From Mytilus californianus (lineage: Eukaryota), in NCBI RefSeq assembly GCF_021869535.1, contig NW_026262723.1, positions 63,984,001 through 64,048,000 of the forward strand: DNA of 64,000 bases, read 5' to 3'. The notes under the pieces are model-generated. The model was not told where the DNA came from. It was given only the letters and a program-made list of their open reading frames with translations, and did not search any database. Every line of letters begins with the position of its first letter. Positions within the stretch are counted from its first letter, which is position 1. Position numbers and translations under genes: made by a program. This document shows, piece by piece, positions 1,894-57,180 of this stretch.

Positions 1894-4800
1894 CTATAGC
1901 ATTTTATATATGATATCTTTTGATATTTTTATGGCCATGCCATCTATGTTGGAGATTTCAAAAAGTCCGGAAAACTGAAATCGTTTCTTGATTTTGTTAG
2001 TTTGGTATGTAATAAATGATTTTTTAAATGCCAATTTCCCGTGAACGATAACGATACTGCTCGTTTCATATTCCACCTGAAAAAAAGCATAAAGTACAGG
2101 TATTAGTAGTTATTGAATTATAAAGTTTTAAAGTTATAAGGTTACAGAGCATTAATCGTGATGGAAAAATAAAAACTACCAAGGCAAGAAGGTAATCATA
2201 TATTTTAATTATTGAAAGGATATTTTTTTACACAAAATTGTAATGATGTTGTGTGTTTATTTTCGATTGATAGATTGATAGATTGGTGACTTCTTATATT
2301 TCTAACGACTACCTATTACATACCAATATTAAAATGGAGGTGAAACAGCACCAATTGAAAAATTAGCATTTAGAACTTATGTAAAAGAAGCCCTAATCTA
2401 ACAAAATATAGCTCGCTTTTGAATGTGTTGTCTACTAATAATTGCAAATAGATTTGCATACATGAACATTTGATGAATGAAAAATATTTGGACCATTTTG
2501 AGCCAGTATTAACTTGAGTTGAGTGGCCGTATCATTGACATTTACCAACTATCTACGTTTATTCATATTAAATTCCGGTCAGTAGTCATGTGATATCAAG
2601 AATAGCATCCCATTTTGTCCGAAAAGGGCTATACATGTATCAGCAAAATAAAATATCTTTGTTTCGATAGAACAACAACACAATTATTTAATCATATTAG
2701 TTTTGACTACATAATGGGTCTTTATAAAGGTCTCGTCCTAGCTTGCATGATTTTGAGAGACTGGTGAAAATATTACCTTGGTCACTATAGGTGCATTAGA
2801 AACAATATAGGTGTATGTGTCCTCTAAACCTCTCACTTTTTCATATAATTGTTTCTGTCTTCTAACAAAACTTAACCCACAAACTGCAAATAAAGGAAGA
2901 AAATGTACAGATAATTAATAAAATATGTATATTTAAACTCCATATTTGTTGTTCTTTACATTAAACTTTTTAAACTTTACACAGAGAAAAAATAAGCAAT
3001 TACAGGTCACGGCCTTCAACAATGAGAAAATCACATACCATAAAGTCGGCTATAAAAGGCTCCGACATTGAAAATGTGCAACAATTCAAACAAGACAACT
3101 AACGTCCTAATTCATAACAAAACCATTTTCGGAAAAACAAATATGATGAACATGAACCAACGTTAAGTTATTTCCTATAAAATAATGCAATATCTAAGTA
3201 TAATATATTGTTTCCTGTTTGGTATTAAATTAATAATTAAGATCCATTTTGTTTCATCTGGTGATCCGTTTATTTGGCAATCGCCATGGCAGTCAGCAGT
3301 GTTTAAGAACATCCGTTGTTCGACCTGCTAGTCAAATGCGTTTGGTTAAAATATACTTTTTCACTTTTTTGGTCTTTTGGAAAATATTGTTTGTGCTGTA
3401 TTTAGACCCCTCTACCAAGAAATTTGTTTTGCATGCACACGTATAAAAATTGCGGTTTTTATCCATCGCAATCATAGGTTTGAACGTTGTTTTCAATTTA
3501 GACTTGTTGGTAATATATGATATATATTTATTAATTATATACTTACTTTTTCCAACTATTTGTTCCTCAGTGTGTTTAGTTGTATCAAGTATATCACAAA
3601 CTGGACAACTGTTTACACAACGCTTTGCAATTAGATGTCTAGTTGATCGTTTTCCAAATATTTCTAAAAAGTAAATACCAAAATTGTCGAATACCACAGA
3701 GAAACAGTGTAATATTGCGATACGAAAAGAACAAATTAGAACATGTAGAAAACTGGTATTTAGAATTAGATGAATATTTAATGATAAAAAAGGAGAAGAT
3801 ACCAAAAGGAGGAACTTGCCAAATAATGCTTTAAAATCCGTGAGAGAAAAAATTTTGACATACAAATTATTTATTCACATTTTATAAATTCAACGAGTTA
3901 TTATTATTAACCATCACGAAGAAAATATATAAAATTGATTAATTTCGAACAATACAACTATAAATTTGATTAACACCTTTATCTATTTATTATAACATAC
4001 TTTTAATTCCCTTCCAAATCTTTTTGCCAGTTTTCTTGACTCCTCTTCCAAATTTCCTGATACCATGTCCAACTTTCTTGGTTATTTTGGCAACACCTCG
4101 TCCAATATTCCTGCCGATTTTTGCTACTCCCTTTCCTAATCTTTTAACATGACTTCCTATTTTGGATCCGATTTTCTTAATCCCGACTCTAACTTTTTTA
4201 ATAGCTCCTCCAACTTTTTTTATTGTACTTTTAACCTTTCCTCCTATTTTTTTTACGAACTTTCCTATCTTCTTTCCAAATCTAGCAGCTTCCTTTCCAA
4301 CTTTTTTACCGAAAGATCCCACTTCAGAAATCACTTTGCCAAATATTTTTTCTCCAGCTTTTTTTAAAGTGTCTTCTATCTTAGAAGTTATGCCTTTAAG
4401 TTTTCCAAGTACTTTATCGCTGATTTTTTTAACTACGTCCAATGTTCTTCCAATTACCTTAAGAAAATTCGCTACTTGTATAACAGGGTTATTGATCACA
4501 CTAAGTAACTTTCCTAATTTTATTTTCTTATGATCCTGTCTTGGTTCTCTATAAAGAATACAAATATTAACAAATTCAAATATAATCTGAGTGTTACTTA
4601 AAGATTATCATATGCTTATTTACTGTTAAATATGATATTATTTGTAACATTTTGTATTCTCTAATTGCAATATGGTGGGTAATAAACAATAATGTAAATT
4701 TTCACCGCTTAGAAATATGTGACTGCGAATATATTGTTTAACAATACATTGTTAAAAAAAAATACATAACGACCTGAAAACCCATTACTGTTAGGGTCAA

Positions 4801-6461
4801 TTCTGAAACTCAGATATTATTTTTTCATGCTGGCTGTATACATTCCACGTGCAAATGTGTCTCATATTTGTTGAAACCTTACGAATAACAGACATTCCGT
4901 CCGCTCCAGTTATATTTAATACACAAATGAAAATCTGTGTAAATATAATATTCAACGTGCTCTGTTAAATATGACTACACTTTTGAACATAATAATCCTA
5001 TCCAAATGTTCTTTTTATCAACTACAAAATCTAATTGTGTTTCTGTAGTAATTTATAAGATACACTTTTCCCTAATGCAACAATAATACTATAATAATCC
5101 GAAAGCGGACATATTTCTTAATACCACCTGCTGATTTATAGTTGTAAGTCTGTACAGGAGACAAACTCAAATATTAGACTTGCCTATGTGACACCTGGTT
5201 CAATTGGGGTGGGGGGTCAGATTTAAGATTTGTAGTATAAGATTTTGCTTTCTCTGTGTTTTATTCAATAACCATATACACTGTACTAACATTTCAATAT
5301 TCAAGTCTGTTAAATTATGAAATCAAGTCTACTTACTGTGGTGCACAAATATTTCCAGCACATTCATCACATGACTTTAACGTTCGGTTTACTTTGATTT
5401 CACACGATAATGTTATAACCTTCTCCTCATTTACAGTATCTTCAATTGCATCGACGATATATTTTACAATATCTGCTCGTGCTTGATCGTTTATTTCTGA
5501 AAAAATTTAATGTTTCAAATTATTTATAAGAAATTGTATTCATTTTATTATATTTTGAATTTTTTAGCTTTCTGAAGAGTTTGTTATACTCTATTCGGGA
5601 ACTGGTTTTTTTTTCAAACAACAGTGACATTCTAATTTCATGTTACACATAAGAAAAATAATTTTGAAAATCATGTAATGGTTAAATAAACTGCCTTCTT
5701 TTATTAAAACGATATTTGAACATTGTCATGAACGAAATAATTTTGTAAGATAATGCTTAGAAAATGATTAGGTACGTTGACTTATATATTCTCAATTCCT
5801 TACAATATATGACCAGTAGCTACAAAGTAAATACATAAATGGAAAAAGGACACATTGTAGATAAATAAACATATATGAAAGGAAGAGTGTTTTTATTCCT
5901 GATCTTCATCTTGCCACTGATTTGGTCTTCAGCGATGATTTGAAGAGATAAAAGCTTTAGCATTAAATAAATAAATTAATTGATAAATTAATAAAAAGAA
6001 ACTGTGTTGGATGCACGTCAGAAAAAAAACTAATAAAAATGAGGAAAGAACAAATTATCTAAGGAATAATGTTGTAATAGCCGTATTTCATCTCACATGA
6101 ACAAGTGTTCAACAATAATCCAAACCTCAAACCTCAACTCATAGTTAGGACAAAACGGTCCTTACTCATCGGTTGAAAAAATACATATGCTTGAAAAAAA
6201 TCCACACTAACGCGCACACGACGTGGTTCACTAGTAACGCTCGTAACATGAAATAGTAACGAAACCTGGTGTGGACTGCATAAAGGCATGTTGAAGACGA
6301 CGTGATATGATAATTATTACATGTAAATTAATGAATTTAAAAATCATTCAGTCTATTAAAACATTTAACTTACTATCCAAATTATTTTGTGGAAGTGAGA
6401 GTAGTTCTCCATTACAAGTACAAAGTGCTGCAACTACTGCCACGAGAAGAGGAATGAACAT
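1894..6461 (-). CDS. Secreted precursor gene 1 (400 aa): signal peptide, 4-Cys N-flank, ~180-aa Lys/Gly-rich amphipathic helix, GKR processing site, 4-Cys C-flank; family unassigned
   Basis: Six GT-AG coding exons join in frame: 6461-6374, 5496-5337, 4548-4001, 3663-3547, 2883-2777, 2076-1894 (intron phases 1,2,1,1,0; 1203 nt). Protein: MFIPLLVAVVAALCTCNG-ELLSLPQNNLDKINDQARADIVKYIVDAIEDTVNEEKVITLSCEIKVNRTLKSCDECAGNICAPQEPRQDHKKIKLGKLL...KKTGKKIWKGIKKIFGKRSTRHLIAKRCVNSCPVC...ICGLSF...ISKDIIYKML*. A paralog at 11-16 kb has the same exon phases. Confidence 0.9.
3190..3520. repeat. Dispersed ~300-bp repeat in an intron of gene 1; second copy at ~42140-42420
   Basis: ggtattaaattaat...atccattttgtt...ttggcaatcg...gtttaagaacatc.gttgttcgacctg.tagtcaaatg...gtttgaac.ttgttttcaatttagacttgtt is shared between the two sites. 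Confidence 0.75.
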
Positions 6462-6786
6462 TTCAAAGATTTTAAAAGCTGGATGATTTTGAAGCAGATT
6501 TTATTGTGTTTTTATAAGCAAAACTACGGCAGTTCCAAGAATTAATTACTAAAAAGCAATCCTATTAATATTTACGTGATATGTTCAGCCATCTGTGTTT
6601 ATAAAACGGGGGATGTTATGTGTTTCATCTGATTTTGTTAATGAAATATTATACATTTTTCCTTCATTATATTTTATTACTATCATAAAAAAATGTGTTT
6701 TTTGTTTGTGAAGTATTTTTTCATATTCTAAAAGAAAAAACATATCACTTTTTTTTTTAACTTACTTTAACTAACCTTTAATGTAC

Positions 6787-6965
6787 CTCAAGGAACTAAT
6801 GTCAATTTACCACAAGAACATATAAAACAATGCGATTACGTACTTGTCATATTTATAATTTATTATTTTTGTTGATATATTTTTTAGGAAACCACATCGA
6901 AATGAAAGTTTTCATGTTTACGACATCTCAAGAGTGTATTCGATAATAATGTGGAAATTTTCCTT
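6787..6965 (-). promoter_or_regulatory. Non-coding first exon and promoter of gene 1 (TATA-like box, kappaB-like site)
   Basis: Donor GAG|gtacat at 6786; acceptor for the signal exon at 6479; TATAAAT on the minus strand near 6857; GGAAATTTTCC at 6953-6963. The region aligns with 21300-21830 upstream of gene 2. Confidence 0.6.
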
Positions 6966-7705
6966 CACTTTCACAGCCACATTCTGTATCCTGTTACAAT
7001 TCAAACCTACTTAATATTGGCCAACTTCAAATCATGTACATGTAAATTTTGAATTGCACTGAAAGTTAACAGTTAAATCATGTTACACTTAACAATTATG
7101 TGAGTTTCAGATCGATACAGATTTGATAAGCATCGTAAACGGAAAACAATAGAATGAATAATTAGGGTCATGTACAACATTTTCTCATCATATGCAATGT
7201 TTGTGTACGATCAAGAATCACTTTGTAATTTTGTATACTTGTAAGGTAGTACAAACCGAGTTCATTAATGAATAAAAAGAACCAATTTCCTTATCTAATA
7301 AGCATGATACACAAAGCAGTACAGGGCAATTTAGTTAAGATTAGACCTATTGGTCCATTTAAAGATTATTTTAAATTTGACTTTTTTGTCTAACCCTTTT
7401 GTCGTATATGGTAGCAAACTTTTAAATATTTGGTTTTCAAGCTTTTTCTATCAAACAAACACTATACATGTCAGCTCTGATAAACACAAAAAAACTGTAT
7501 GTACAAACAATTTTTACATGATTTTCACATTTGCAGATCACCGAATAAACCTAACGATAACTGTAACCTCAAGATGGTGTACTCGATGCAAACTAGTTAT
7601 CTTCTCTTTGATATTTAAATTGATTTTTCAATACTGTTAATCTCTCTTTATTTCTGTGATAAATGTATCCTCACTATCCCTAATCTTAAGATCTAAGACA
7701 CCGAA

Positions 7706-9330
7706 AACATATTGTTAGTGAGTTGAGACACAGACATATCGTATCGGTACACCAATTTAGTGTCGATTTTGGGTTGTTCTTCCTCATAACTCTGTTGGAC
7801 ACTTTTTGACCACACCACTGTTAATTAAATTATAAACTGTTAACACGCACGGGCGTCACGTACTAATTGAGATATGTAAACGCTAAATGATGGAGCAGAG
7901 GGTATGTTACTACTGAGAAAAAGGTAGTTGACAAATGGAAAATTAAATCTATCACGTTTGTCATAAACTCCATTTTGAGGCCGTCCATCTTTACCATCGA
8001 GGAAAAGAGTAAGATATGAAGTAAACCTTCTAGTTTCGGTAGTATCCTTAATTTCAAGCACTCTTTTTGACTTTGGCACGGTTATGCATGAATTCTGGTT
8101 CATATGAGTAAAAACAAAACAAGTCGGCAAGCAGGGGTGTCCAATAAGTACCCATTTGAATACAATGGTTGTTAAAATATCAATCAACCAAACTCAACAA
8201 ATGTTTGTCTATCAAAAGGCCAGCATATTGATGATATTGTCTTCGGTATGTTTGTTGTTGGAATCAGAGTGGTTCTTTACGAAGAAAGATTTCGTGACCT
8301 AAAACAAGGAATTTGCATCTATGATTCCTGTTTTTGTAGAGAAAACCCTGTTAAATGAGACGATGCAGTTGATCTTTCAATTGAGCATTCGAAAAATTGT
8401 GAAGATTGGAGTTGCAGATTTTGAATATTTTGAAGTAAATATTTAGACCTTAAATTTTCAGCTACATATTCGATTGACACCACTGATAGAATATGCATTA
8501 TCACACATTGCTAAAGGCCATCTTTTACTTGTAGGAATATGATTATTCGAATAATTTGACGACGCAGCTATTTATCGTTTTTCTTTAAAAATGTATCTGT
8601 TTAGGTAGACAGTATAAAGACAGGAGAGTTTCATTGTCTGTTTTTATGTTAATACCAAGGGAGAGAAGGATGGATGTTTGATATTCTTACTTTTCTTCTT
8701 TTGTGAAAAAAGTAGAGATTCCGTTTTTAAGTAGACATTCTAAAGGATTCTTACCAAACCAAATTATTTGAGGCTTTGTCTGATGGAACAACAACATCAA
8801 CATAAAGAGAGGGTTCAGAGCTTTTTCAAAGGACAGAAACCCCTGTGATCATTGTATATTGTAGATTTTGAAGGCGTCTATATTTCAGTAGTTCTCCTTG
8901 GTTGCTGTCTGTAATATTTTTTAACATTAATCAGGCCGTTTGGCTTTTCGTTTGAATTGTTTTACATTTTCTCATGTCACGACTTTTTATAGCTGACTAT
9001 ATGCTATGCGTTTTGTCTGATTATCGAAGGTCGTACGGGGACCTACGGTGACTTTATTGGATTCTATTGGATAGTTGTCTCGTTGGCAATCATACCACAT
9101 ATCCTTGTTTTATTCTGAATGCATAACCGAACAGCTTTGATCCATTCAGATAAAATGTCCAGTTTTAGTTGATTTCGTTTGCGTTTTACCCATTTTCTGG
9201 CACAGTCCTCAACTGCATCCATCAATAACCAGAATGTTTTCCTTCCAGTTGATGGGTTAGAGAATCGGTATGTCATTTGGCTAACAACTCTCTCAGCTGT
9301 TCATTGCGTAGGAACTTTCATTAAATGTCT
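7706..9330 (-). mobile_element. Degraded Penelope-like retroelement (reverse transcriptase remnant), interrupted by a dispersed repeat at ~8890-9112
   Basis: Translated fragments LEIKDTTET...YDKRDRFNFPFVNYLFLSSNIP..P...VYISQL.R.ARAC and LMDAVEDCARKWVKR...LSEWIKAVR, plus a frameshifted FLIDNIFVEFG / P.LADLFL.SYE RT segment, match the abundant mollusc Penelope-like elements as I recall them. Many stops and frameshifts. Confidence 0.75.
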
Positions 9331-9448
9331 TAAGGCTTATTTAGACAAAGCAGTGCTATAAACATATTTGGTCAAAATATACTTGTTGTATTGAAATATT
9401 ATTGAAACAAAGCGAGAAGAAAACAATTTATTTTTGTTCCGATTCCAG

Positions 9449-9565
9449 AATAAACAATGTGCAATGTGTCACAACTGCGGATCACCTTTACCGTTATTTA
9501 GAGACAAAAATGTCGGATCAGTATGTTTCAATCAATGCAAAAGGCAATGTGAGCTTTTTTCCTGA
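9449..9565 (+). CDS. Candidate terminal exon of a small 6-Cys peptide (orphan; upstream exons not found)
   Basis: Strong acceptor (tttatttttgttccgattccag) followed by NKQCAMCHNCGSPLPLFRDKNVGSVCFNQCKRQCELFS*; ATTAAA about 100 nt downstream. Confidence 0.35.
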   Translation, partial: NKQCAMCHNCGSPLPLFRDKNVGSVCFNQCKRQCELFS

Positions 9566-10199
9566 CTTGGCGTTCGTCATCAAACCTACATTGTTGGGCC
9601 TAATTTATGATGGATTCATATAAGATATATTAGTTCATGTGTTTGTTTGTGTTATTTGTTTATACATTAAATACTTCATAGTTGGTTTTATTCTTATTTA
9701 CTGAGTTTATTTATTCACATCATCGTGTTTGTGTGTAAATCACATTACATAAACTGCTTGATGAATGAATAAGGTATTGACAATTCACTTGGAAACTCAA
9801 CAAATACCCGCTTTGGTATCTTTCGCCTCTCTTTTGTAAGCCATATTGGTGTTATGATATGCAAAATACAAAATGTATAAGACATCTACCTGTTCGTAGT
9901 GAGGTATCGCCTTTATGGTTGTCAATTTTTTTCTATTTTTGCTGCTTGTAACTTGGTTTTGATGACATACATTTGATCGCCTTTATTGAATAAACTCATA
10001 ACTTGTCACACGGTATGACCGTTGACCCTTCGGTAAAGACCATAGTCTATTTTGTTTAACTTGTGTTTCTAAGCTAACTCGTTAACGTTTACCCTGTATC
10101 TCAAAATGTTCTCTTATACAATACATAAATTTCAGAAACAACATATTTTGCATACATTTATTGTCAGTAAAATTGTAAATTAAGGTAAGTGACATATTA

Positions 10200-10725
10200 A
10201 ATAAATCTTTACAACGTTTGCATAAGGTTTGGGATTTTCAAATATTTTGGCTATCATTGAAGTTTCACCAGCCCAGTAGTCAGTACTTCTGTACTGGCAT
10301 GGAAATACGGATATTGTTTTGTCTGAAATTTGCTGTCATAAATTTTGAAAATCATTTTAAATTAAGGAATATATCTCCCTTATGCCAAGCTCTGATTCCT
10401 TGTCCGGTTTTGGCTATACTTTAATAGAAAAGAAAGGATTACGCGGTATCCATCCATGGCAAAAAATCAGTATGTGCACAGCAATTAACACAAAAAGTAA
10501 AGGAACAGCACTTATTCTTCATTTCAAAGTCACAGTAAGGCCTTCAACACGGAGCAAAAAAATCTCACCTCACTGAAAGTTTAGATCCTTCTTGGTTTGA
10601 TCAGCCCTTCAACGTTTGTATTAGGTTTTAGATTTTCAAATATTTTGGCATCAATAATCACAAGAGATATTATTTTCAAAATGCGCATCTGGTGCAGTAA
10701 AATTGGTATCGTTTATGTTATTAAA
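10200..10725. repeat. Two partial copies of a dispersed repeat (10200-10335, 10595-10725); related copy at ~13790-13880
   Basis: Shared gattttcaaatattttggc...aaatgcgcatctggtgcagtaaaattggta.cgtt.atgttatta motif. Confidence 0.55.
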
Positions 10726-11001
10726 GCTGAAATATTAAACGATTGAATTATACCAAACATAATGATTGGAAAAGGTTTCAACGGGGAGCACATCTTGTTT
10801 AACATGCAAAAAGGAGACACCTTATATCTAATACAATTATGTTTTATGTCTCAAGATAGCTTTTAATTTCATGTTTGAATCCTTTTTTTACTTTCAACGG
10901 GGACCATATCTCATTCTACATGCAAAAAGAAGACACTGTTTATTTAAAACAATTTTGTATTATGTCTAAAAATATTCAATAGTTTATTTTTCATATCTTT
11001 T

Positions 11002-14000
11002 TTAAAACATTCGGCTAAAAACTTCTTTTGATATTTTCATAGACATTCCGTTAATGTCAGAGATTTCAAACAATCCAGGAAGTCTAAATCGTTGTCTCAT
11101 TTTACCAGTTTGGAATGTTACAAATGATATCTTGAACTCTACTCTTCCGTCTGTAAAGAGAACACTATTCTTTTCATACTCCACCTGAAAGTGAAAAAAA
11201 AACTCCATACTGGTGTTGAAGATATGGTACTCTCGACTCTCCATATAATAGCCGGGTTGATATAAAAAAAAAAAAGGAAACGTTATAAAAAGAATATCCA
11301 TGACTGGGCATAGGTATTCGTCATGACAATCTATGCTATATATTTTTCAAAAATAATTTGAAAGTCGTCTAAGTTTTTTGTATATTCGGTCAAAGAATTT
11401 TTTTTCATTTTTTTTTAATCGCACATAATAATTACTTACTATTATGTATAGCAATATAACAGACAAAAATAATTCTTGTGTTTATATCATTAGAAAATGA
11501 AAATTCCTCATAACAAAAAAATATCCAAATAAATAAATTAACCAGCGACAATTATAGTTCTAGTGGTACCAAGTCGATTAAAATACGACCAACATTTTTA
11601 TTTCAAACTTTTATATCAAGTTTATACTGATATAGCAAGTGTCGAACTCTCATGTGTTTGCACTGGGTTTAAAAAAAACACAAAGAAAAAAATATTTACA
11701 TATTATAAAGTGTATTCAATACTTATAAATATAGTATTAACTGTTAGAGACTATTGATTTTAAATTGATTTCCTTCATAGGCTCATAACAGTGCACAAAA
11801 ACGGAGGGATTCAATAAATCTCAAACATCTAGAAAGTACATAAATTATAGTAAAAAATTATTCAGGAAATAGTGAGCATTGATTAAAAGCTAGAGACACG
11901 TGACAATTTTTGACCTTTACATTTTAGTTTTCATGAATGTATAGTGATAAGGTACCAATGCTTGACGGATGTTCTTATTACTCCCTCCTCCAATAGCAAT
12001 CCTCGACTAAATCAACACTTATGACTTATAATGGGTTTCGGGTTCCACAAGGAAACAATATGAACATAACCGCATATGTCCTCATGTTGTATTATGCAAA
12101 CTCATTCAATGTTACAATTTCGAAAGGCATTATATGTAAATGCTAAGAGGACTAACTATGTAACCTTCAAACTTATTGATATAGGGTTATTTCAAACTAT
12201 GCGTAGCAATGGCAGGCGAAATTAAAAAAAATACCTTTGAAACAATTGAGTTCTTGGAGAGTATGAATCTGTAAAGAGCTTTTAAATCTTTTATTTTTTC
12301 CGCTGCTATCTTCTGCTTTGTAACAAAAGTGGATCCACAAACTAAAATGACAATGAATATCGTACACATCGGCAAACAAATTTTTAAATGTAAAATAAAG
12401 TACATGTATATTTTGACATATTTATGCAACTGACAAAAGGCATCGAGAATTATTTTAAGATGCCCTTATTGGATCAACTGGAGTATACGGAACAAATGGT
12501 TCCCAGTTGCGCATTATTAATGAGTAAATTTGCAATTATTAAATTATAAATAAAAACATATCGACATATCGCCACATCGACATATCGACACATCGACACC
12601 TCTACATATCGACATATCGACACATCGACATATTGACACATCGACATATCGATACATAGACACATCGACACATTGAAACATAGACACATCGACACATCGA
12701 CATATCGAAGGACTATCGTAAAATTAAATCTATTAAATCGTAATTTTAAAGTTTTTTCAATTTGTGATTTCACATGAGAATATAATGCAAACGCAATAGT
12801 AAAGCTTCATGCTGTGTCAATGACAGTTCGAGTAGCGTATGATGTGTCAGTGTACAATCAAGCACCGTTGTTTGTGTCAATTTGCAGTCTGGCGCCGTAG
12901 GCTGTGTCAATATGTAGTTTAGCGCCGTAGGCTGTGTCAATGTGCCGTCTAGCGCCGTAGGCTGTGTTAATGTGTAAGGTTGAGCCAACTTGTTCTCGTA
13001 CCTCAAACAAATGACAAGATATATTCCTCACTGATATTACTGCCGCTCAATTTTAATGATTTTATTTTGTAGTAAAAATGTGAAACAATCAATTTGAAAC
13101 TTTTGCAAGAATAAAAGAGAGGACATAAAAACGTGTTTTATGGTATAGCATAATTAGATGAAACGTGATGCCATATATCAGGAAACTGACTTGTTAATTG
13201 CTGAGAAAAATTGTGTGAAAGTTTCATATATGTGCATGTTTTAAATATGTTAATGTACAAATATTTTAAATATAAGCTTTTGGCAAACAGGGAATTTACA
13301 AAGGAAATACATCATGGAAGAAACTGCAAACGTGTTGCAAAAGTATGGCATAACGAAATGAACTTTGGTCCCATATATCTAGACACTTTGACTTGTAGTT
13401 TCTGATAAAAATGCAACAGAAATGTGTTTCGGGCAGTTAGCCGCATGAACGTACGTACGGACGAACAGAAGTAAATAAATATATCCCAATCTTTTGAAGA
13501 AGGTTACATACACTGTTAAAATGTACATTTTGTTCTACTTACTTGTTAGTATTATTTTGTCCTGTTTATTCTTGCTGGTATCGACCCGATCACATTGTGG
13601 ACATTTTTTTGCGCAGCGTTTTTTCAGATGTCTGGTTGATCGTTTACCAAAAATACCTGAATTATGTAGAATGTGATATTTATTTCTAATTGTCAAATTG
13701 GTGCATGTATTTTGAAGTGAAAATATCAGTATATGAAAATATTAAAGAAATCTCAGTGTTGGAAAACAGTTTTAGTATTCATGAAACTTAAAGTTTTTGG
13801 TCATTCAAATATTTTGACCTCGAGCCTCCCTGTCTCAAAGCGCTTCTAGTGCAATAAAATTGGTACCGTTAATGTTATTAACAGATTAAGTAACTTATAA
13901 ACGATGCTACACATTTTCTTTTTTTTTCGATAATTTTGTACATGCATATTTTGAAATGTTCTGTAAAATAAAACAATATTCAGTAATTTTTGTGTTATAA

Positions 14001-16121
14001 TGATATCTTTAAAGTTAATCACAATCTTACTTTTAATGCCACCCCAAACTTTTTTACCAGTGTCAACAATACCATTTTTAACCTTATTAGCCTGTTCTTC
14101 AGCTTGATTTAACCATCCTTTCATTTTCCAAGTGACATCTTCGGACCAAGAATTAAGTTTTCTATCTAGATTTTGAACCAACTGCCCAACGTTCTGTCCG
14201 AACTTAGCAGCTTTTGTAATAGGTTTGTTAACTTCGATCAATAGTCCTTTAATGATCTGTTCGTGTATTTGTGGTGGTTTACTATAAATGAATAAAAGAA
14301 CAGTTTAGTATTCATATGCATGAAAGGGAGTCTTGGGTACACTTCAATGAGACAATAAACAAGATAAAAAAAAACAGTTACCATAGCAACAAGCAGTTTT
14401 GTTTTTTTCAAATAAAGAAATGTATATACTTGTTTGTGTGGCAGCTTTTAAAGTGTTATACTTGTTTCGTCATTATTCTTCCACTCCTTTATTTATTAGT
14501 TCAAGATTATTACCAACATGTTTAAGTCCTTTTAAATAAAGGTAGAAACACGCAATTATATGGTAACCGTTGTTTTCCATGTAATTTACTTATAATTGAT
14601 TGATTGTTGTTTGCTTAACGTCCAGTAATTTACTTATAATCAAACGGTTCAAATACTTGTGATCGTTGAATATGTTTAAAATATACAAGTGAGGTAAATT
14701 GTTATAGGTTGAGGGCATGATTCGCATGGGGTTATGGAATGCATACAAGGAGAAGCCTACTATATCGACGCATCTGATATCGCACTATTTTGGATTTCCT
14801 TTCTGTTCATCATTTATGCATGTCATCTGCAGCCTTCTGTGCTCTTATGTTGTAAATGTCAGAAGTGTTTTTAAGCGTTTTTAACACGGAACAAAACTAC
14901 GTATCTTAGTTGTATATATAATCTTATCATACATACGTGCATGTGTCCGTATTTTGCTACTTTTATAATTGAACCACTTATGTTGCTAATTTATTAACAT
15001 AATACCGAATTCCAAGGCAACTTAAAAAAAGGGGGAAGTCCATAAAACCAAACAAAACCAAACGCTCGACTATACCAACCAATGGTACGACTGGAAAACG
15101 GTGATCTATAGTTGCTTGCATACACGTCATTTGGTTTCTGGTGGATAGTTTGTTTCCTTGGCAATACTACCACTCATCCGTATTGTTATATTACAGAGAT
15201 TGGAATAAATTTAACACGGAATAAAATTGAGAATGCATATTTATTTGTATGATTGTCAATATTTCAGATATGAGTTTTGTGACTCAGGCCGGAAAATGTA
15301 TATCAAAAATATTAATCAAATTAAAGGACCAATTTTATATAAATTATAAGCCTGGTAGTTTTATTATCAATATTATCAATAACAAAATAAAACTTACGAT
15401 TGACAACGATTTTTTTCACATTGTGTGCATGATACCATTGTTTTGTTGATGTTGGCCTCGCATTCCAAAGTTGAAAGCGTCTGAATGTTTGTAATCTTTT
15501 CAATTTCATCAAGTATATAAAGTAAAATGTCTTTGCTCGTCTGAATATTTATTTCTAAAATCAAAAACCAAGACCATGTCATTCATAAGTATAATTTAAC
15601 AGTTTGAAATTAAAAAGAACTGTTGAGAAGTTCCAAAAGGCTATAAAAATATGTTGTATTAGATCTCATTTTCCAATTACAATAGGAAATGAGTGCACCT
15701 GATTTTAATGTATATCATAAAACAATTCTTATGTATACTGTCTATTTTCAAGAGAATATTTTGAAACAAACTCTATGTGAACAAGTGGTGACTTGATATT
15801 TACAGTTATAAATTAATGTGGTTGGTTGCCGCCAAACCTCCATATGTATGACAGTAAATAAAACTTCAATTATGTATTTTGGTAACGATGTTCCTTACTA
15901 GGGTAAGCAAAGTGTCTGGAATGACTGTACGCAGTTATATTAATTTTCATATAACCACACAATAAAATCAAACCTAACCTTCCTCTTTTTTTTTTACAAA
16001 ATATCTTATGTAAACATAACTTACTGTTCACGTTGTTTTGATGAAGGGACTCTAAATCTCCAAGACAAAAACAGAAAAATGTTACTACTACTACAAACAC
16101 GGAAAATATCATTTTGTTCAT
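11002..16121 (-). CDS. Secreted precursor gene 2 (302 aa), paralog of gene 1 with a shorter, less cationic helix exon
   Basis: Coding exons 16121-16025, 15554-15398, 14281-14031, 13656-13543, 12341-12235, 11184-11002 (phases 1,2,1,1,0; 909 nt). Protein: MNKMIFSVFVVVVTFFCFCLG-DLESLHQNNVNKINIQTSKDILLYILDEIEK...LECEANINKTMVSCTQCEKNRCQSKPPQ...TGKKVWGGIKSIFGKRSTRHLKKRCAKKCPQC...ICGSTF...ISKEVFSRMF*. The last two exons are the same length as in gene 1 (107 and 183 nt). Confidence 0.9.
12557..12708. repeat. Degenerate 8-bp micro/minisatellite (acatcgac / atatcgac)n, intronic
   Basis: Direct reading of tandem cgacatat/cgacacat units. Confidence 0.9.
12800..12985. repeat. 30-bp minisatellite, about 6 units, intronic
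   Basis: Anchor gctgtgtcaat or a variant recurs at 12811, 12841, 12871, 12901, 12931 and 12961. Confidence 0.9.
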
Positions 16122-36314: not shown

Positions 36315-38843
36315 TCAAGTAAGACTTTTCAAGATATCTACAAGTTTCTTTCTATTTCTAACTCTTGTTTTTTCACCCTTTTTCTTAAAAATCAATTCTT
36401 TTATATCATTATCACTAAGATTTTCAATATCTAACTCATTTACAGTACTAGAACTTTCAACATGACCTGCAGCAAAAATCTCATCATCAATTTGCTTTCG
36501 TCTATCATGTCTACTAGTGAAAATATTATTTTCCCACCATTCTGATTTTTTAACATATTGCCGTTTAGGCCTAGCTACATTTTCTGCATGATTAAACTCT
36601 AACCTCTTTCTGACTTGCAAAGCCTCAGAGGGACCGTCCCATTTGGAACATTTACGTTGATGAATTGTCTTAATTACATCGTTATTTTTCTCAACACCTT
36701 GGTTCGAAAACCTTTTCAAAGAACCATATTTTGAAATAAAACAAGGTACATGGTAGATAAGACAGTGCATATAAGGTGTTACATTACATTTTAAATACCC
36801 TTGTCTCTCGATGGACAAAAAAAGTTCCATCCAACTCTTAATTTTACAAAATATATCAAATCCAGTTACATTTTCACATTCTTTGCTACATACAAATAAA
36901 TAAATGGCATAAAAATCCTGCCATACCTTTACAACCTTTTCTTTTGTATCAGTGTTCAGAACATCTGAATTTAACAATTTGTCTGGCAAATATTTTAACA
37001 ATTTAATTTTTTCACCACCAGATAAGCTGGTCCATTCTAAGTCGTTGCTACCCTTTGGTGTCCAAATATGGAAAACAACACCGCAACTTTGTACCAAATC
37101 TTCAAAATTGTCAATATTCACTGGTTTACAACCACTTTTGATTTCTTTTCTGATTTTATCATCTTTGTTTTTGCAATCATCTATCAAATTTCTTAATAAA
37201 ATGTCAGTTACCCTTAACATCAGATGCAATTCATCAGGTACATAGTGATCAACCCCAATTTCTAATAATGGTTTATGCTTGACACCAAACTGACTTTTAC
37301 TCTGACTACTCAGTGTAACAATTTCATCTATTGAACGCAACATATCTACATTATGGTAAAAATCCCATGCTTTGGAAGTGTCAAATCTGTTGTCTTTGTG
37401 AACTTTGCACCAAGGACAGGCAAAATTACCTGTTGACCCACCTAAACCAAGTAAAATTTGAATAAATTTCATATCCCCACCCACAAAAATGTCTAAATCA
37501 ATATTGTGATCATCAACAGAAATGACTTTTTCCTTAGCTAAAACACTTAGCTGCTCAAAAAGAGGTTTACAAGAAGACCTAAGGTTTTCATAATTCTCAC
37601 TACATTTAACTACAGCTACTGTATTTAAATCATTACAAGATAAGCTACATGTATCATCACTTGATAAAACCTGAACAGAAAAAATTACAAAGTTTGAAAT
37701 TCTGCTCACACGAGCACCATCACCTGAAAATTTAATGTCTAATTTGTTTACATTTGATAAATTCTGAAAGTTCTGCTTTATAACTCTTTTCAACTCTGTA
37801 TCTAAATTAATCATTGCCCCTGGCATGTTACCAGGTAACCTCTCTAAGTGAAAAATTTTGTTTATGTCATTTCTACTTTGAACCACAATATATTTTCGAG
37901 GCATGTTATCGAACAGCATTGAAAATTCATGATACGCGGAATCACTCACACAAAATTTGTCTAATAAAAAAACCAATTGTCTCAAATTGTCTTTCTCGCT
38001 TGCTTGTAGAGTGTCATAGCTGTCTTGTGATGGGGAGTTGCTCAAATTCAAGGAAACTTTTTTACCAGCATCTGATATACAGTCTAATTTAGTAGGATTC
38101 AAGCCAAAAGTGTTTGCAAAACACAATGCCTTTTCAGCATAGCTTTCTAATGTTTTCAACTTCCGGAGTCTTTGCCTTGGTTGTAAATCATCAAACTTTT
38201 TTCCACTATTAGAATATTGCTGTTTTTCGATGTTCTCTATATATGTGGTCAGTGTTGAATTTCTCTTTAAAATATATTCTATTTGGTCAATACATGTGTC
38301 TAAATTTTCAGCAATGTCTGCACTCTGATTTTGTTCACTTAACAATAAGTTAAAAAGATCTTTGCATTTTTTTTCAAGCTCTACTTTTTCATGGTTGAAT
38401 TCAGATATTCTGCAATTTAAAGAAGCTACATTTTCTAATTCACTCTTAAAAATGGTAATGTTGTATAACTTGTTGTCATACTGGTATCTCTTTGACCCGC
38501 TGCGGTATTTTACCTTGTAATCATTGTAAACTTTTGAACAGAGGCGATTTATATGTCTCTCAACTCTACCACTTGGCAAAAACTGGAGAAATGTCAATTG
38601 AGAATTTATTACAGCAATAAAAGACAATCCTGTATCTTCAGAGGTGTTAAGCAATCTCAATAAAAATTTACTACTAAGTTGTAACGTTAATGCTACTGAT
38701 GTTGAATCTACAGATTGTTTATTAACATGATATGGAGTCTGTTGAGATGTGAAGCTAACGGAATTTTGAAACTTTTGTAGCGAAAGAGGAGACAAAAAGT
38801 CAGACATTGTTAAAAAAGTCAAAAGCACCAAAGAGTGAAACAT
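36315..38843 (-). CDS. RAG1/Transib-like DDE transposase, 842 aa, uninterrupted ORF
   Basis: Motif order matches the RAG1 core: KFSGD375GARVS, VGGD457MKF, FAC476PWC479, VPDELHLMLR, TPYMH693CLIYH698V, SNQGVE718KNN (mouse RAG1 D600, D708, C727/C730, H937/H942, E962). An NBD-like FDDLQPRQRLRKLKTL segment lies upstream and a short helical tail at the C-terminus. Confidence 0.88.
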   Translation of the reverse strand: MFHSLVLLTFLTMSDFLSPLSLQKFQNSVSFTSQQTPYHVNKQSVDSTSVALTLQLSSKFLLRLLNTSEDTGLSFIAVINSQLTFLQFLPSGRVERHINRLCSKVYNDYKVKYRSGSKRYQYDNKLYNITIFKSELENVASLNCRISEFNHEKVELEKKCKDLFNLLLSEQNQSADIAENLDTCIDQIEYILKRNSTLTTYIENIEKQQYSNSGKKFDDLQPRQRLRKLKTLESYAEKALCFANTFGLNPTKLDCISDAGKKVSLNLSNSPSQDSYDTLQASEKDNLRQLVFLLDKFCVSDSAYHEFSMLFDNMPRKYIVVQSRNDINKIFHLERLPGNMPGAMINLDTELKRVIKQNFQNLSNVNKLDIKFSGDGARVSRISNFVIFSVQVLSSDDTCSLSCNDLNTVAVVKCSENYENLRSSCKPLFEQLSVLAKEKVISVDDHNIDLDIFVGGDMKFIQILLGLGGSTGNFACPWCKVHKDNRFDTSKAWDFYHNVDMLRSIDEIVTLSSQSKSQFGVKHKPLLEIGVDHYVPDELHLMLRVTDILLRNLIDDCKNKDDKIRKEIKSGCKPVNIDNFEDLVQSCGVVFHIWTPKGSNDLEWTSLSGGEKIKLLKYLPDKLLNSDVLNTDTKEKVVKVWQDFYAIYLFVCSKECENVTGFDIFCKIKSWMELFLSIERQGYLKCNVTPYMHCLIYHVPCFISKYGSLKRFSNQGVEKNNDVIKTIHQRKCSKWDGPSEALQVRKRLEFNHAENVARPKRQYVKKSEWWENNIFTSRHDRRKQIDDEIFAAGHVESSSTVNELDIENLSDNDIKELIFKKKGEKTRVRNRKKLVDILKSLT

Positions 38844-47800: not shown

Positions 47801-50800
47801 TTCACCATCTTGGATTGTAAAAAGCAAGAGAACCTAAGGTCCAGATTTTCAATCAAGTTAGCAAAATTTGATGAAGCAATGCAGAAAACTAATCTGAATT
47901 TGCATTTAAAAGAACAAATTTATAAGATAATAACTTATAAAAATTAATATTTATTCCAGTGTATATTATTTTTGCTTGATTTTTAATGTTTTTAAATTGG
48001 CATTTTAAGGGGAGGTAATTGTGTAACTGCATTTTCTGAAGGAATCTACATGGAATTTTGCTATTCTATATTTTAGCCAGAAAAACATACGGTGACCCTG
48101 TCTTTTCTTTTGATATTCTCAAAGCATTTTCTTAAAGCTGTAATCTCGAATTTTATTTTACAATGCTATCATTTAGTTTAGATTCTTATCATATGATGAT
48201 GTTTTTTCCTGTATAATCCATACAAAATGTGTCATTTTGTCACAACCTGTAGCTTGAGAAAATGCATGGTGACCTATCATTTTTATTATATTTTTGAATA
48301 TATTTCAATAAAAACTACGTTTTTGGCAAAGTATGAACAAATTCTATCATTTTTATACACCCTTTTACAGGAGTATTTAATATGGTATACAGTTGACTGT
48401 CCATCGTCAACATGTCAGACATTAATTCAAAAACGCTTGTTCCAATATGCATGAAACTTTGGTGAATTAGTTTATATCTATTGACGTGAGCTCCCTTTCG
48501 TTTTTTATAAATTTCGGATTTACCGTTTCCTAATAATAATATAATAAAAAAGATTCTTTTATCGTTTAACATGTGTGATGATGAGGGACTTGTTTTTTAA
48601 TAAATGATTTTAAGATGATTTTATTGAAAAACATATTCTGTAAATTCAGTATTTAAAGTTTTCTTATAAATTCTTTTTTTTTTTTTTTAATTAATCAATT
48701 TTATTGCACCTTTGCTGTTAACAATTTACTCAATCTACAGCTTCAATTAAGTATCCCTTTAAATTAGTTATTGAATATCTAGGGAAAGATATTCAATAAA
48801 GTATATCTATAAAGTAAGTTATATTAATACAGATCAATACATTAGAACAATTCTACATAATTTTTGTTTTTTTACCGGAATACGGTACGTTTCTTAACCT
48901 ATACTGTATATGATTTTTTTATCAAAGCTTCACTGAACCGCGAAATTGATGATGTATTGATCTTTGATACTGATAGCATGACTCTTCAGTCGACAATAGA
49001 ATTTTGAACTTAAAACTTTTTGTTTTGTTTACAACACTGAATTATATAAGAAGTCTTGGATGATGAGGTAAAAATGTTTTTTTTTTCACACATTATTTTT
49101 TAACAGTAAATGTTGATTTCTATGATAAAGCCGAAGATCGAAAGTTGATCGAAAGTACACGTGGTCTTCAAATTATACATGTATGCAGTAACGTTGCATT
49201 GTGTTGTGTATTCTGCTCGCTCTCCTGCTGATTATAATTTTGCATTGTGAACAGGAATAAACATATTTAATAACAATTCTAATTCAGTGTAGCTGCAAGG
49301 ATTTGTATAGTGAGCTCACTATACAAATCCTTGGTAGCTGTAATAAATTATAAAAGAGTAAAATTGCAAATTTCAGTTAATGCACACCAATTGACTGGAC
49401 ACATGTGCAGTCATGTATTAATGAGGTCACAGCTAAGACTTGTATCTAATAATTGTCATTTCATTTAAAGGAATTCGAAATATTCCCTTGTTTTAAGTAT
49501 TATTTTCTTGTTTTTTTTGCTTCTGATTTTATTTATGTTTATAATGTCCCAGATTTCATTTTTGAAGATTTTGAAGATATCAATGACCTTATCTTTCTTG
49601 TCAGACATATAATATGCTTTATAGATGGAAAAGAAAATTATAGTTAATAGATAGTTCATATCAAAATAAGCTTCATCATCAATTTTATAGCCAGTTACTA
49701 AACTTTCAAGACTAAGTATATGCTTATCAATTTTTAAAAATGCTAATAGCTGGTCAACTTTATGCCAATAATGAACATTATATGAACAGGAAAAAAAGAA
49801 GTGTTTATAATCATCATGTTGCTTACAATAGAAGCACAAACCACTTGGTACTATTTTCCATTTATAAAGTAATTCATTACAGGCTAATATATAATGTATT
49901 ATTTTCCATTTAAACATTTTAAATTTGTTGTTTTCAAGGTAGTTAAAAATAAAGTTAAATGTGGACTTCAATTTTGTAGTCATTTTTTTATGAAGAATTC
50001 TTTCCCACATTAAAACTCCTGTCGGTTAATCATGTGTAAATTGACTTTGCAAGAAAGTATATACTTCTTTGTTACTCATATCTGGTGAAATTTCATGTTT
50101 TAGTAGTATATTTAACTTCACTGATGTTTTTATGTTGACAACAGTTTTGTAAGAGCTTTCTTGTTTTAAAATATTTTGCCAGTGCTTTGGTATAGCTTTT
50201 TTAACTAATGAAAATTTTCTAATCCAATCTTGTTTATTCTTTAAATTTTTTAGTACAGTTTCTGATGATATGTATCCGTTTTCATCTAATATATTATTGA
50301 TGTACAAAATATTACTATTAATCCAGTTTTGAAAGAACAAACATTTCCCATTTTCTTTGATAAGATGATTTCCCCATATAAGTTGTTTTCTAACCTGAAG
50401 AAAGTTTCTTGGTATGATTGTTTGGCCTCCTTTTATTTCTACCCATGTTTTAATTAATTGTTTATAGAATTCAGGTAAAGATTTATAATCTATTTTATTA
50501 AGCAAATTAACATTTGTTAAATTCATTCTGAATAAAAGAAAATCTTTCCCAAATTTATCAAGGTAAAATCTTGGAATAATTTTCCAGTTATCATTTTCCT
50601 TTTTGATTAGTTTTAAAACCCATCTGATTTGTAATGATTTAAGATAGCAGTCTAAATCAATCATTTGTAATCCTCCCTCAAGATATGGTTTACATAATAT
50701 AGTACGTTTAACTTTATCTTTTTTTCCACTCCATATAAAATTATATATTAAATTCTTGAACTTTTGCTTTATTTCCTGTGTTATTATCATACTTGATGCA

Positions 50801-55381: not shown

Positions 55382-57180
55382 TTACGTGTCAGTTTCACCT
55401 GCCTTGGTTTCTCCTTTTGACATGTCGTGAAAGAAGTCAGTGTCCTTATTGTCATTCATATGTGGAAACATCTCAGATGGAGATGATCTAAAAATAAAAT
55501 AAAGGAATAAATTAAGGAAGGAAGGAAATAATTGTAGATTTAAAGAAAATGTTTTACATTATGTTTAGGAAGTGGATTGAAGTAGAAATCAAAGGTTGGT
55601 TGACAGTCCTTGTCTTTTTCTACTCTTTATCTCGATATTTTCAACCACGTAAATGACATAGTGTGATATAGTTACTATTTCAAGGCAAGTGAAGTGGAGA
55701 TTGAAAAATTATTAAAAATAGAAATTCTTTTTATCTGATGTAAACAATATCAAATAAATAAATCGTTCAGTGTGTCTTTTAAATATGCATAACGAGAAGA
55801 TAATCAGACTTGCATACACTAATAAAGGATGCTTAATCCACAACATATGTTCTGACATGGTCTGACAATGTACATATTAAAGAACTGTTCCGTACGTAGC
55901 ACGTTGAAATGCAATTAAGATGTCTAACTTATACCCAAATACGCCCTTTGTTCAGTAGTGTTCAAAATATTTGTCCAATTCATACGGTCAAAAGTAGAGA
56001 GACAATAAAAGGGTGCAACCACATTAACAAATCAACCTAACTTTCAAATTCTGCCAACTGATATATGCATAAAATATTTACCACAGTACACAAGGCAGCC
56101 AAAAAATACCAAATTAATCATTGTTTCAATTGCAACATACCCTTCATTTTTAAGGAATTTCATGGTATGGTCAATGGCACATCTAGAGCATTTGCAGAAG
56201 CAATGTCCTCTCCAAAGAACCCAAGCATATTCTGCACAGTGTCTTCTTCTGCAAAAGGCTTTACATCTTGAATCACAACCTGCATCTGCCTCGTGGACTA
56301 AATCAAAATATCATAAATGTAATCAATAAAAGCGAGATATTTTTTAAAGATATTGGTTATTTGGGAATATTTCAGAGAATCGTTGTCTAATGCATGTATA
56401 ACCACACCTGAACTTTTTCTTGTCATTTACTCAGCACAAAGTATTTAAGTATTCGTCAAGAGATAATACAGACCACAAAAAGAATAGCATAAATTTGAAG
56501 AGGGATGAACATTTATGACAAAATGTGGCCGGCATAGTTTTAATTTATAGAGACATCCGGAAATTAATTTTGTTAATATTAGTTTGATAAGCGTAACAGT
56601 TTATAAACCTGAATCGAAGATGAAATATTGAGACAATAACAATTTGGAGTTCGGTATTTTTGTCATTTTATTTTTGACTTATTTTTTGTAAATTCGTTAA
56701 AGTTTATTTTGCAACCGCGAAGCAAAAAGTCCTTTATCGAAGCCACAATTCCGTCCTCTTTTCTACGATTGTGACATTCCCGAATGAGACTTATCATCAT
56801 TCGTAGCAGTTGGGATGGCCGTAGGTGTTTTGTGAGTTCGTCTTGCTCAGTCTTTAGTTTTCTTTTTAGTGGTGTGTAGACTGTTCGATTTGTTTCTGTT
56901 TTTCAGGACATAGTATTGTCGGTTTTTCGTCGACTTGTGTATCCTCTTTAGAAACATTTTATTGATACTGCTCCCCATGATCAAATCCATCTTTACTGTA
57001 ACAAATACTTTGACGTCGTCGTTCCTAATGAGTTTAAAGCGAACGCAGCAAGGACTTAAAACTTTTTAATCTGATTTTCTCACATTTTTGTATGCCATTG
57101 CATTATACTTCAAAAAAAATTGTTTTCATACCTGCAAGAATTACTGCAAGAGCAATAGCCAGAATAATTGCTACCTTCAT
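55382..57180 (-). CDS. mytilin: Mytilin antimicrobial peptide precursor, copy 1 (103 aa, intact)
   Basis: Exons 57180-57132, 56297-56141 and 55487-55382 give MKVAIILAIALAVILAVHEADA-GCDSRCKAFCRRRHCAEYAWVLWRGHCFCKCSRC-AIDHTMKFLKNEGSSPSEMFPHMNDNKDTDFFHDMSKGETKAGETDT*. This is co-linear with the mytilin B precursor (8-Cys, 34-aa mature peptide, acidic C-terminal extension). A non-coding exon ends at 57416. Confidence 0.96.

Follow-up and report, generated by a model that had tools for sequence, protein, structure and literature searches.

A Mytilus family of secreted precursors with a variable amphipathic arm and a layout resembling that of clusterin

Introduction

Humoral immunity in invertebrates is studied with mussels as a reference system, and nearly all of the known mussel effectors are small, Cys-knotted peptides. 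This report deals with two tandem genes of Mytilus californianus, here called genes A and B, that lie in a 64,000-nucleotide stretch of contig NW_026262723.1 (assembly GCF_021869535.1, positions 63,984,001 to 64,048,000 of the forward strand), hereafter the window. Coordinates are those of the window unless another locus is named, and all genes, exons and reading frames cited from it are on its minus strand. What is new here is the conserved, tandemly expanded family to which the two genes belong, with at least four paralogue types that would join a convertase-processed disulfide frame to a long, evolvable amphipathic arm.

Several described systems offer points of comparison. In prohormones of the insulin/relaxin type, the connecting peptide between dibasic sites is excised and the chains are held by disulfides that were made before cleavage. 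The analogy with the mussel proteins is functional only, as sequence and fold are unrelated, the putative mussel chains are 150–250 and 120 amino acids long, and the Cys pattern is another one. Closer in layout is clusterin. The human protein has the disulfides 102–313, 113–305, 116–302, 121–295 and 129–285, and is cleaved at Arg227/Ser228 (PMC10488069). The crystal structure revealed a coiled-coil and a disulfide domain, the latter with a single Cys-bearing helix along which short helices of the alpha chain run in a zigzag; the furin cut creates functional tails, the protein is described as a vertebrate one, and clusterin homologues share only ~15% mutual identity (PMC12527946). Among antimicrobial peptides (AMPs), the myticalins are the known Cys-free linear peptides of mussels (PMC5577615, PMC12294457).

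Two Tandem Genes with Two Cysteine Ladders

Genes A and B are tandem units of six conserved coding blocks each. Gene A (1894..6461) specifies 400 amino acids and gene B (11002..16121) specifies 302, in both cases by a splice model of six exons with the stop codon included. The two products have a common layout, which runs from a signal sequence through a first Cys ladder (C-x10-C-x2-C-x4-C), a Cys-free amphipathic helical arm and a processing motif to a second ladder (C-x3-C-x2-C-x17-C) and a tail of ~95 residues. A preliminary description of this DNA, made from the letters alone, had proposed two tandem paralogs with identical intron phases and had listed the signal peptide, the two Cys patterns, a G-K-R motif and the conserved tail. 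The tandem arrangement and the phases were borne out, and every one of the listed motifs is present in both A and B.

The signal peptides were recognized by inspection. That of gene A comprises residues 1–18 (6408..6461), with a hydrophobic core, small residues at −3/−1 and a predicted cut between CNG and ELL, while that of gene B comprises residues 1–21 (16059..16121), with a predicted cut between CLG and DLE. The N-terminal ladder follows as C61-x10-C72-x2-C75-x4-C80 in gene A (5345..5404) and as C64-x10-C75-x2-C78-x4-C83 in gene B (15403..15462). Its Cys columns are invariant in all six of the exon-2 sequences, which represent four paralogue types, and five of the six have an N-x-T sequon within the first x10 spacer (5389–5381 in gene A, 15447–15439 in gene B). 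The arm is residues 81–268 in gene A, with exon 3 (4001..4548) supplying the bulk of it; the shorter arm of gene B is residues 84–171, has a net charge of +6 and is represented by exon 3 at 14031..14281.

Between the arm and the second ladder lies the processing motif, FGKRSTRHLIAKR in gene A (3620..3658) and FGKRSTRHLKKR in gene B (13616..13651), with FGKRSTRHL..KR as the form common to both. Gly-Lys-Arg is a dibasic cleavage site combined with an amidation signal, and R-S-T-R fits the minimal furin site R-x-x-R. Gene A's FGKRSTRHLIAKR holds G-K-R, R-S-T-R and a K-R that directly abuts C281. The C-terminal ladder, C281-x3-C285-x2-C288-x17-C306 in gene A (2879..3619) and C183-x3-C187-x2-C190-x17-C208 in gene B (12337..13615), spans intron 4 in both genes; in gene A exon 4 supplies its first three Cys, and C306 follows as the opening full codon of exon 5. 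All the Cys of this ladder are invariant, as is the Pro of C-P-x-C. The C-terminal domain is encoded by exons 5 and 6, which supply residues 306–400 of gene A (1897..2881) and residues 208–302 of gene B (11005..12339), and exon 6 is the most conserved exon of all. The isoelectric point (pI) changes sharply along the gene A product, from 4.4 in the acidic N-flank to 11.3 in the arm and 9.2 in the C-terminal chain.

Gene Models and Selection

The models were built from the minus-strand list of open reading frames (ORFs) by three-frame reading, comparison of the two regions, reading of the boundaries and joining of the blocks. The exons of gene A are 6461–6374, 5496–5337, 4548–4001, 3663–3547, 2883–2777 and 2076–1894, and those of gene B are 16121–16025, 15554–15398, 14281–14031, 13656–13543, 12341–12235 and 11184–11002. 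All 10 introns of the two genes are GT-AG, with the phases 1,2,1,1,0 in A and again in B, and the window is free of runs of N. The alignment of proteins A and B covers their whole length, with 32% identity (E=4e-66) and a single large gap, which falls in the middle.

Four independent lines support these models. The M. coruscus protein CAC5403944.1 (P0022) is 400 amino acids long, and its signal peptide and exon-1/2 junction match the gene A model, which supports exon 1 in particular. The M. californianus entry XP_052069419.1 (P0007, LOC127708553) equals gene A exactly from residue 30 onwards. Locus L006 of M. coruscus shows collinearity with the window, has 90–94% nucleotide identity to it and retains the order B then A, with exons 3–6 of gene B at 86–98% identity. 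Finally, the ratio of nonsynonymous to synonymous substitution rates (dN/dS, Nei-Gojobori), with M. californianus compared to M. coruscus, amounts to 0.18 over the whole of gene A, 0.12 for its arm exon and about 0.1–0.2 for exons 3–6 of gene B. Genes A and B are under purifying selection, and with a ratio of ~0.18 the genes are therefore functional.

Two annotations can be corrected as a result, namely a missing signal exon in the RefSeq model of gene A and a full-length model of gene B that is missing in every species. The RefSeq model (XP_052069419.1) begins with 'MT' and lacks the signal-peptide exon at 6374–6461. Its first exon was probably mis-called, since the signal exon exists in the window, in M. 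coruscus, in M. galloprovincialis and in the models of paralogues. For gene B, the databases searched returned no full-length protein from any species, and the nearest entries are partial models of 242 (P0013) and 235 amino acids (P0017). The M. coruscus orthologue of gene B (L006 1089–3929) has exons 3–6 intact, yet it is unannotated. Gene B also has tandem repeats in intron 4, at 12556–12708 and 12836–12974 (an 8/24-nucleotide unit in ~19 copies and a 30-nucleotide unit in 4.6 copies), and a 116-nucleotide unit in 2 copies at 10776–11003 starts immediately past its stop codon.

The Amphipathic Arm

The gene A arm has a net charge of +46, with 24% Lys and 15% Gly, and an 11-residue periodicity; the autocorrelation of its residue identities peaks at lags of 11, 18, 7 and 29. 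Three of the 11 positions of the A-type unit, as read from the alignment, are hydrophobic and flanked by Gly. The periodicity is also a helical one, with a peak at 100 degrees in gene A and peaks at 98–100 degrees in the hydrophobicity spectra of all four arm types, for which comparison with shuffled sequences gave z = 16.3 (A), 23.0 (A2), 7.0 (B) and 10.8 (C). The hydrophobic moment of the A and A2 arms reaches 0.89. In A2, the arm is made of near-perfect 11-residue units with Gly at 4 of the 11 positions, encoded by a 33-nucleotide tandem repeat present in 4.6 copies.

Across the family the arm ranges in length from 88 to 216 amino acids and in net charge from +38 to +48 in the A and A2 types through +6 in B to about neutral in gene C. 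The cationic amphipathic helix of the preliminary description thus stood in one half: amphipathicity is strong throughout (z 7–23), whereas polycationic arms are confined to A and A2. A short mature peptide of the cecropin kind, which would have about 20–40 residues, is not supported by the observed lengths or by the purifying selection on the arm exon. What the arms share across the types is helical amphipathicity, while charge and length vary.

Paralogues and the Processing Junction

A profile of exon 6 was compared with 1.84 billion cluster representatives and matched only 5 clusters, with no distant kin among them. One of the five held P0001 from M. galloprovincialis, the first full-length relative, which as a query gave the rest of the family. 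Orthologues and paralogues occur in tandem arrays in five Mytilus species, M. galloprovincialis, M. trossulus, M. edulis, M. coruscus and M. californianus. A single 207-kb contig of M. galloprovincialis bears eight models with consecutive numbers (VDH98830-37), at least 5 family loci are present in M. trossulus, and each of the other three species has several. All of the family entries are labelled 'uncharacterized' or 'hypothetical', with only a compositional domain as a precomputed annotation, and no paper that mentions the family was found with accessions, locus names, characteristic peptides or sample ids. The earlier suggestion of an unrecognized family therefore holds, in that neither a name nor a Pfam domain nor a paper was found, and the evidence supports a real, unrecognized and unnamed secreted family of the Mytilus lineage.

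Besides A and B, two further types were distinguished. The A2 type consists of P0008/P0023 and P0009/P0010. In M. californianus as well as in M. coruscus, A2 is followed directly on its downstream side by gene C, a divergent member (L004 17050–25435; L005 17847–25437) with the same first Cys ladder and an uncharged amphipathic helix exon (K+R 23, D+E 19); equivalents of exons 5 and 6 were not found within the fetched stretch. At the junction, gene C has FRRKR followed directly by C-x3-C-x2-C. Its optimal furin site, RRKR, occupies the same position as the (K/R)-R that abuts the first ladder-2 Cys elsewhere, and that (K/R)-R is common to the four paralogue types, as are the Pro of C-P-x-C and all eight mature-protein Cys.

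The G-K-R...S-T-R-H-L insertion and the second K-R were found in every A, A2 and B member that keeps exon 4, and they are missing from gene C. The proposed G-K-R cleavage and amidation signal consequently applies to three of the types and fails for the fourth. Since gene C has FRRKR alone and no G-K-R, the ancestral feature would be a furin-type cut at the junction of arm and ladder, not amidation. Upstream of the arm, no basic cleavage site is conserved across the types; an HKK/RKK near the arm start occurs in the A orthologues only, and A2 and B are without it.

Relatives in at least one further organism are indicated by contigs L001–L003 (two metagenomes, one sequencing run), as they carry exon-5-like and exon-6-like pieces at 30–48% identity, split at the same intron position. 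The contigs, with pieces at L001 1–1139 and L003 192–965, have a G+C fraction of 0.32–0.34, and L001 has two exon-6-like genes ~1 kb apart. Metagenome scans with exon 6 and with P0003 gave no relatives. Within M. coruscus, a second B-like copy lies between A and A2 (L006 17540–20577, equal to L005 about 1691–1869) and is represented only by exon-4-like and exon-6-like pieces; because its matches are interrupted, it looks fragmentary or decaying. One predicted isoform from M. trossulus (P0012, LOC134727041 isoform X2) skips exon 4 in frame, so that the processing motif is lost and only one of the four ladder-2 Cys is left. A 488-residue protein from a Joint Genome Institute (JGI) metagenome, P0018, was considered as a relative and rejected, as the similarity of its arm is compositional (E 1e-3) and its flanks differ. 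This secreted protein, in which a cationic 11-residue repeat comes after an RFKR site, reaches the ApoLp-III threshold, so polycationic 11-residue arms occur on other frames as well.

Database and Structure Searches

Searches of Pfam with the exons and with five family members returned no match above threshold. Genes A and B do not match PF10690 (Myticin-prepro), and the statement that the proteins match no known AMP family was borne out by the Pfam searches of A, B and their relatives. The recurrent sub-threshold matches were to families of amphipathic helices that act at lipid surfaces, namely ApoLp-III, phasin, REF, ApoC-I and CsmC. ApoLp-III scored 25.7–27.9 bits, on the gene A arm among others, below the cutoff of 36.3, and Pfam gave no match to PF01442 (ApoA1/A4/E). 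Weak compositional matches to suprabasin and collagen-like repeat families were also seen. In sequence and profile searches of the PDB, the only returns were designed coiled coils and chance matches. The C-P-x-C motif raised a thioredoxin-like role, which was rejected, as it produced only a 24-residue sub-threshold match and the structural model has no thioredoxin fold.

AlphaFold2 (AF2) was run on P0007 with a 12-sequence family alignment and a second time on P0013, an N-terminally truncated B-type protein. In the P0007 model the flanks are the confident parts, with a moderate predicted local distance difference test (pLDDT) score of 62–79. The predicted order is a long helix bearing ladder 1, a helical middle, a coil at the motif, two short ladder-2 helices and a C-terminal domain made of a 25-residue helix, four antiparallel strands and a terminal helix. 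For the C-terminal sheet, local matches to NTF2/SnoaL-like rolls were found with both models. A Foldseek comparison had been proposed at the outset; with it, the P0007 model found no significant match in the PDB, the best E being 0.065. Clusterin chains came at rank 8 (7zet_A, E 0.32) and rank 12 (7zeu_D, E 0.45) of 350,542 chains, aligned over nearly the full length with TM-scores of 0.16–0.20.

Comparison with Clusterin and a Proposed Mechanism

The idea that the spacing of the first ladder is that of clusterin was set down before any structural search. Clusterin (PF01093; PDB 7ZET/7ZEU) is likewise a secreted precursor, its first ladder lies on a helix, as is predicted for the mussel one, and the mussel spacing of x10, x2 and x4 equals that of human Cys102, Cys113, Cys116 and Cys121. 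Both have a central amphipathic or disordered region with a furin-type basic site between two Cys clusters, and the mussel proteins have a signal peptide, recognized by inspection, and between the ladders (K/R)-R in all types, RRKR in gene C, and R-S-T-R and G-K-R in A, A2 and B. The second ladder contains C-x2-C in both, and what comes after it in clusterin, and by prediction in the mussel proteins, is a long helix, then an antiparallel sheet of small size and lastly a terminal helix. The clusterin ladders pair in antiparallel fashion, and the same pairing is proposed for the mussel proteins by analogy. In layout the family resembles vertebrate clusterin more closely than it does a classical AMP precursor, and the likeness appears to be more than casual.

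There are differences as well. The mussel proteins have 4+4 Cys, whereas clusterin has 5+5, and the second ladders have only the C-x2-C core in common. The mussel cut would abut ladder 2, while that of clusterin is ~58 residues upstream. Before the first Cys there are ~42 residues in the mussel proteins versus 80 in clusterin, and the tail has 94 versus 136 residues. The tails of clusterin are Phe-rich and Lys-poor; the mussel arm is an 11-residue repeat and, in the A types, polycationic. Because the sequence searches miss clusterin and the Foldseek E-values are non-significant, homology is unproven. Literature searches on clusterin in bivalves turned up no relevant paper. The stronger claim, of a genuine invertebrate relative of clusterin whose tail region was replaced by an expandable 11-residue repeat, serving in the A types as a polycationic, Phe-amidated arm against microbial or anionic surfaces, we regard as rather doubtful.

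Our tentatively favored reading, which we hold to be plausible though short of probable, is a two-chain, disulfide-linked secreted protein with a variable amphipathic arm, acting as a humoral binder of surfaces or membranes and, for the A types, in host defence. All of the paralogues have in common the two ladders, the amphipathic arm with a furin-type site where it meets ladder 2, and the folded tail, features that argue for disulfide folding of the N- to the C-terminal part followed by cutting. After removal of the signal peptide in the endoplasmic reticulum, the ladder-1 helix and the four-Cys segment behind the arm would pair antiparallel through up to four disulfides, which in gene A, by the clusterin analogy, may be C61–C306, C72–C288, C75–C285 and C80–C281. 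The stapled core would pack against the helix and beta-sheet domain at the C-terminus. Late in the secretory pathway, furin or a convertase of the prohormone convertase (PC) type would then cut the invariant basic site next to ladder 2, and in the A, A2 and B types an additional cut at G-K-R would release a connecting peptide of 7–9 residues and possibly leave a Phe-amide. From the motifs, gene models, periodicity and charge differences described above, we infer the cleavage, amidation, disulfide pairing and function in this scheme.

Such processing would yield two linked chains, and the arm, released at its C-terminal end, would remain on the scaffold as a flexible tail. The arm would be the variable working part, growing by tandem duplication of 11 codons. 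On account of its charge and its narrow hydrophobic face, a polycationic A-type arm would suit anionic membranes or polyanions such as those of microbial envelopes, and the weakly charged arms of B and C would suit neutral lipid or hydrophobic surfaces. Action would be like that of clusterin or of an exchangeable apolipoprotein equipped with a cationic arm, and unlike that of a small released peptide. To judge from the sequences, a two-chain product in the manner of clusterin or insulin would be a better fit to the conserved features than a released helix, and the family is best filed, provisionally, among convertase-processed, disulfide-linked two-chain secreted proteins, as a type whose layout is clusterin-like and whose repeat arm is like that of apolipoproteins.

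Several findings weigh against this reading or against its clusterin component. The Pfam Clusterin family was not matched at E<=10 by the exons or by P0001, P0022, P0008, P0010 or P0013, nor did PDB profile searches at E<=10 with the whole family, ladder 1 or ladder 2 return 7ZET/7ZEU. With a mean pLDDT of 53 for P0007 and 47 for P0013, the AF2 models are weak. The clusterin chains found with the first of these predicted structures are non-significant matches, and clusterin is missing from the best 50 Foldseek matches of the second, truncated B-type one. In the proposed pairing, the x17 spacer of ladder 2 would face the x10 spacer of ladder 1 and need a loop. The arm of gene A has 15 dibasic sites, at which extra cutting to small peptides is possible. 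As for a role in immunity, the ~40 kb that separate the genes from others of myticin/mytilin type make proximity weak evidence.

Alternative Explanations

The preliminary description had favored a cage-and-release precursor, in which disulfide flanks hold a cationic helix inactive until convertases free one or more amidated, membrane-permeabilizing peptides. Of this, the secreted-type precursor and the G-K-R motif stand, the latter invariant in the A, A2 and B members, but no conserved upstream cut was found that would free the helix from the frame across the paralogues. Precursors of the cecropin, dermaseptin and piscidin types likewise combine a signal peptide and a Gly-Lys-Arg signal with a helix that is cationic and amphipathic, and the A and A2 arms with their strong charge and amphipathicity (+38 to +48; moment up to 0.89; z 16–23) would suit such a role, as would the dibasic sites within the gene A arm, the HKK/RKK near its start in A orthologues, the acidic N-flank, which is like many AMP propieces, and the myticin/mytilin-type genes in the same window. 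However, in contrast to those precursors and to the myticalins, the mussel helix is 88–216 residues long and forms the middle part of a disulfide-rich frame, with no sequence match to any known AMP family. It is under purifying selection (dN/dS 0.12 for the arm exon of gene A), unlike the mature AMPs of mussels, which are short and fast-evolving. The flank charge of −5 is insufficient to neutralize +46, gene C has no amidation signal, and the B and C arms, which are not cationic and are un-AMP-like, sit on a frame that is kept whole. We consider release of such a peptide unlikely. A multi-peptide neuroendocrine precursor is hardly credible. It would use the R-F-G-K-K/R and F-G-K-R sites of the arm, the first of which is well conserved, to yield several short amidated peptides, but these sites are in phase with the 11-residue amphipathic repeat instead of flanking repeated identical peptides, they are lacking in B and C, and neuropeptide precursors are not known to have two conserved Cys ladders and a folded tail of 95 residues.

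Compared with these peptide-releasing schemes, a true, highly diverged protein of the clusterin/apolipoprotein type, which would carry lipids or hydrophobic ligands or act as an extracellular chaperone in haemolymph and not kill microbes, draws on other evidence. The order of parts and the first three Cys spacings equal those of clusterin, clusterin entries came eighth and twelfth in the Foldseek ranking, and clusterin's own homologues have little identity to one another. Amphipathic helicity is the one arm property kept in all four types, and 11-residue units in long amphipathic helices are typical of exchangeable apolipoproteins (ApoLp-III, PF07464; ApoA1/A4/E, PF01442), in line with the sub-threshold matches to ApoLp-III, ApoC-I, phasin and REF. 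Those apolipoproteins, however, have neither a pair of Cys ladders nor a convertase motif nor a beta-sheet tail, no search reached a clusterin or apolipoprotein threshold, and clusterin is described as a vertebrate protein. The extreme charge of the A-type arms (+46) and their Gly content (4 of 11 residues in A2) are atypical of lipid carriers, and differences of copy number and length between species are commoner in defence or interface proteins than in core lipid transport. This account also seems to us improbable. Still less probable is a role in structure or at an interface, for example in byssus, mucus or shell matrix, with Lys/Gly repeats that bind polyanions or mineral and a Cys frame that cross-links. 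It would agree with Lys/Gly-rich tandem repeats that expand by unit duplication, with a lineage-restricted family of variable copy number and with the weak suprabasin and collagen-like matches. The known byssal and shell proteins of mussels have patterns rich in Tyr/3,4-dihydroxyphenylalanine (DOPA), Gly or Pro, unlike these repeats, which hold strictly to the amphipathic phase of a helix (z up to 23) and are lacking in B and C. A soluble, processed protein is what the globular C-terminal domain and the invariant convertase motif argue for instead.

If the two-chain reading is true, the family would represent a new presentation of a membrane-active helix, tethered to a scaffold and not released. 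Kinship with clusterin, if true, would move the origin of that fold outside the vertebrates, and a single frame with arms that range from cationic through weakly charged to neutral would form a natural series for the function of clusterin-like tails. Next to the classical AMP genes of mussels there would then be an array encoding a two-chain 'clusterin-scaffold' effector of humoral type.

The Genomic Neighborhood

The placement of the genes near a mytilin locus, as first described, was confirmed. Cys-rich exons at 56310–56047 and 60533–60270 match Myticin-prepro (PF10690; Pfam E about 1e-10), and by this match the exons at 56 and 60 kb are taken to be tandem mytilin/myticin-type AMP genes, ~40 kb from gene B. 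They share with genes A and B the chromosomal neighborhood and secreted, Cys-containing products, whereas sequence, size and Cys pattern are unrelated. Retroelement ORFs lie in between, with three consecutive ORFs of a non-LTR (long terminal repeat) type retroelement at 49465–51735 (PF00078, E 1e-34; zf-RVT, E 9e-8). An uninterrupted ORF of 842 amino acids at 36315–38843, which has no Pfam match at E<=0.01, may be transposon-derived or an orphan gene.

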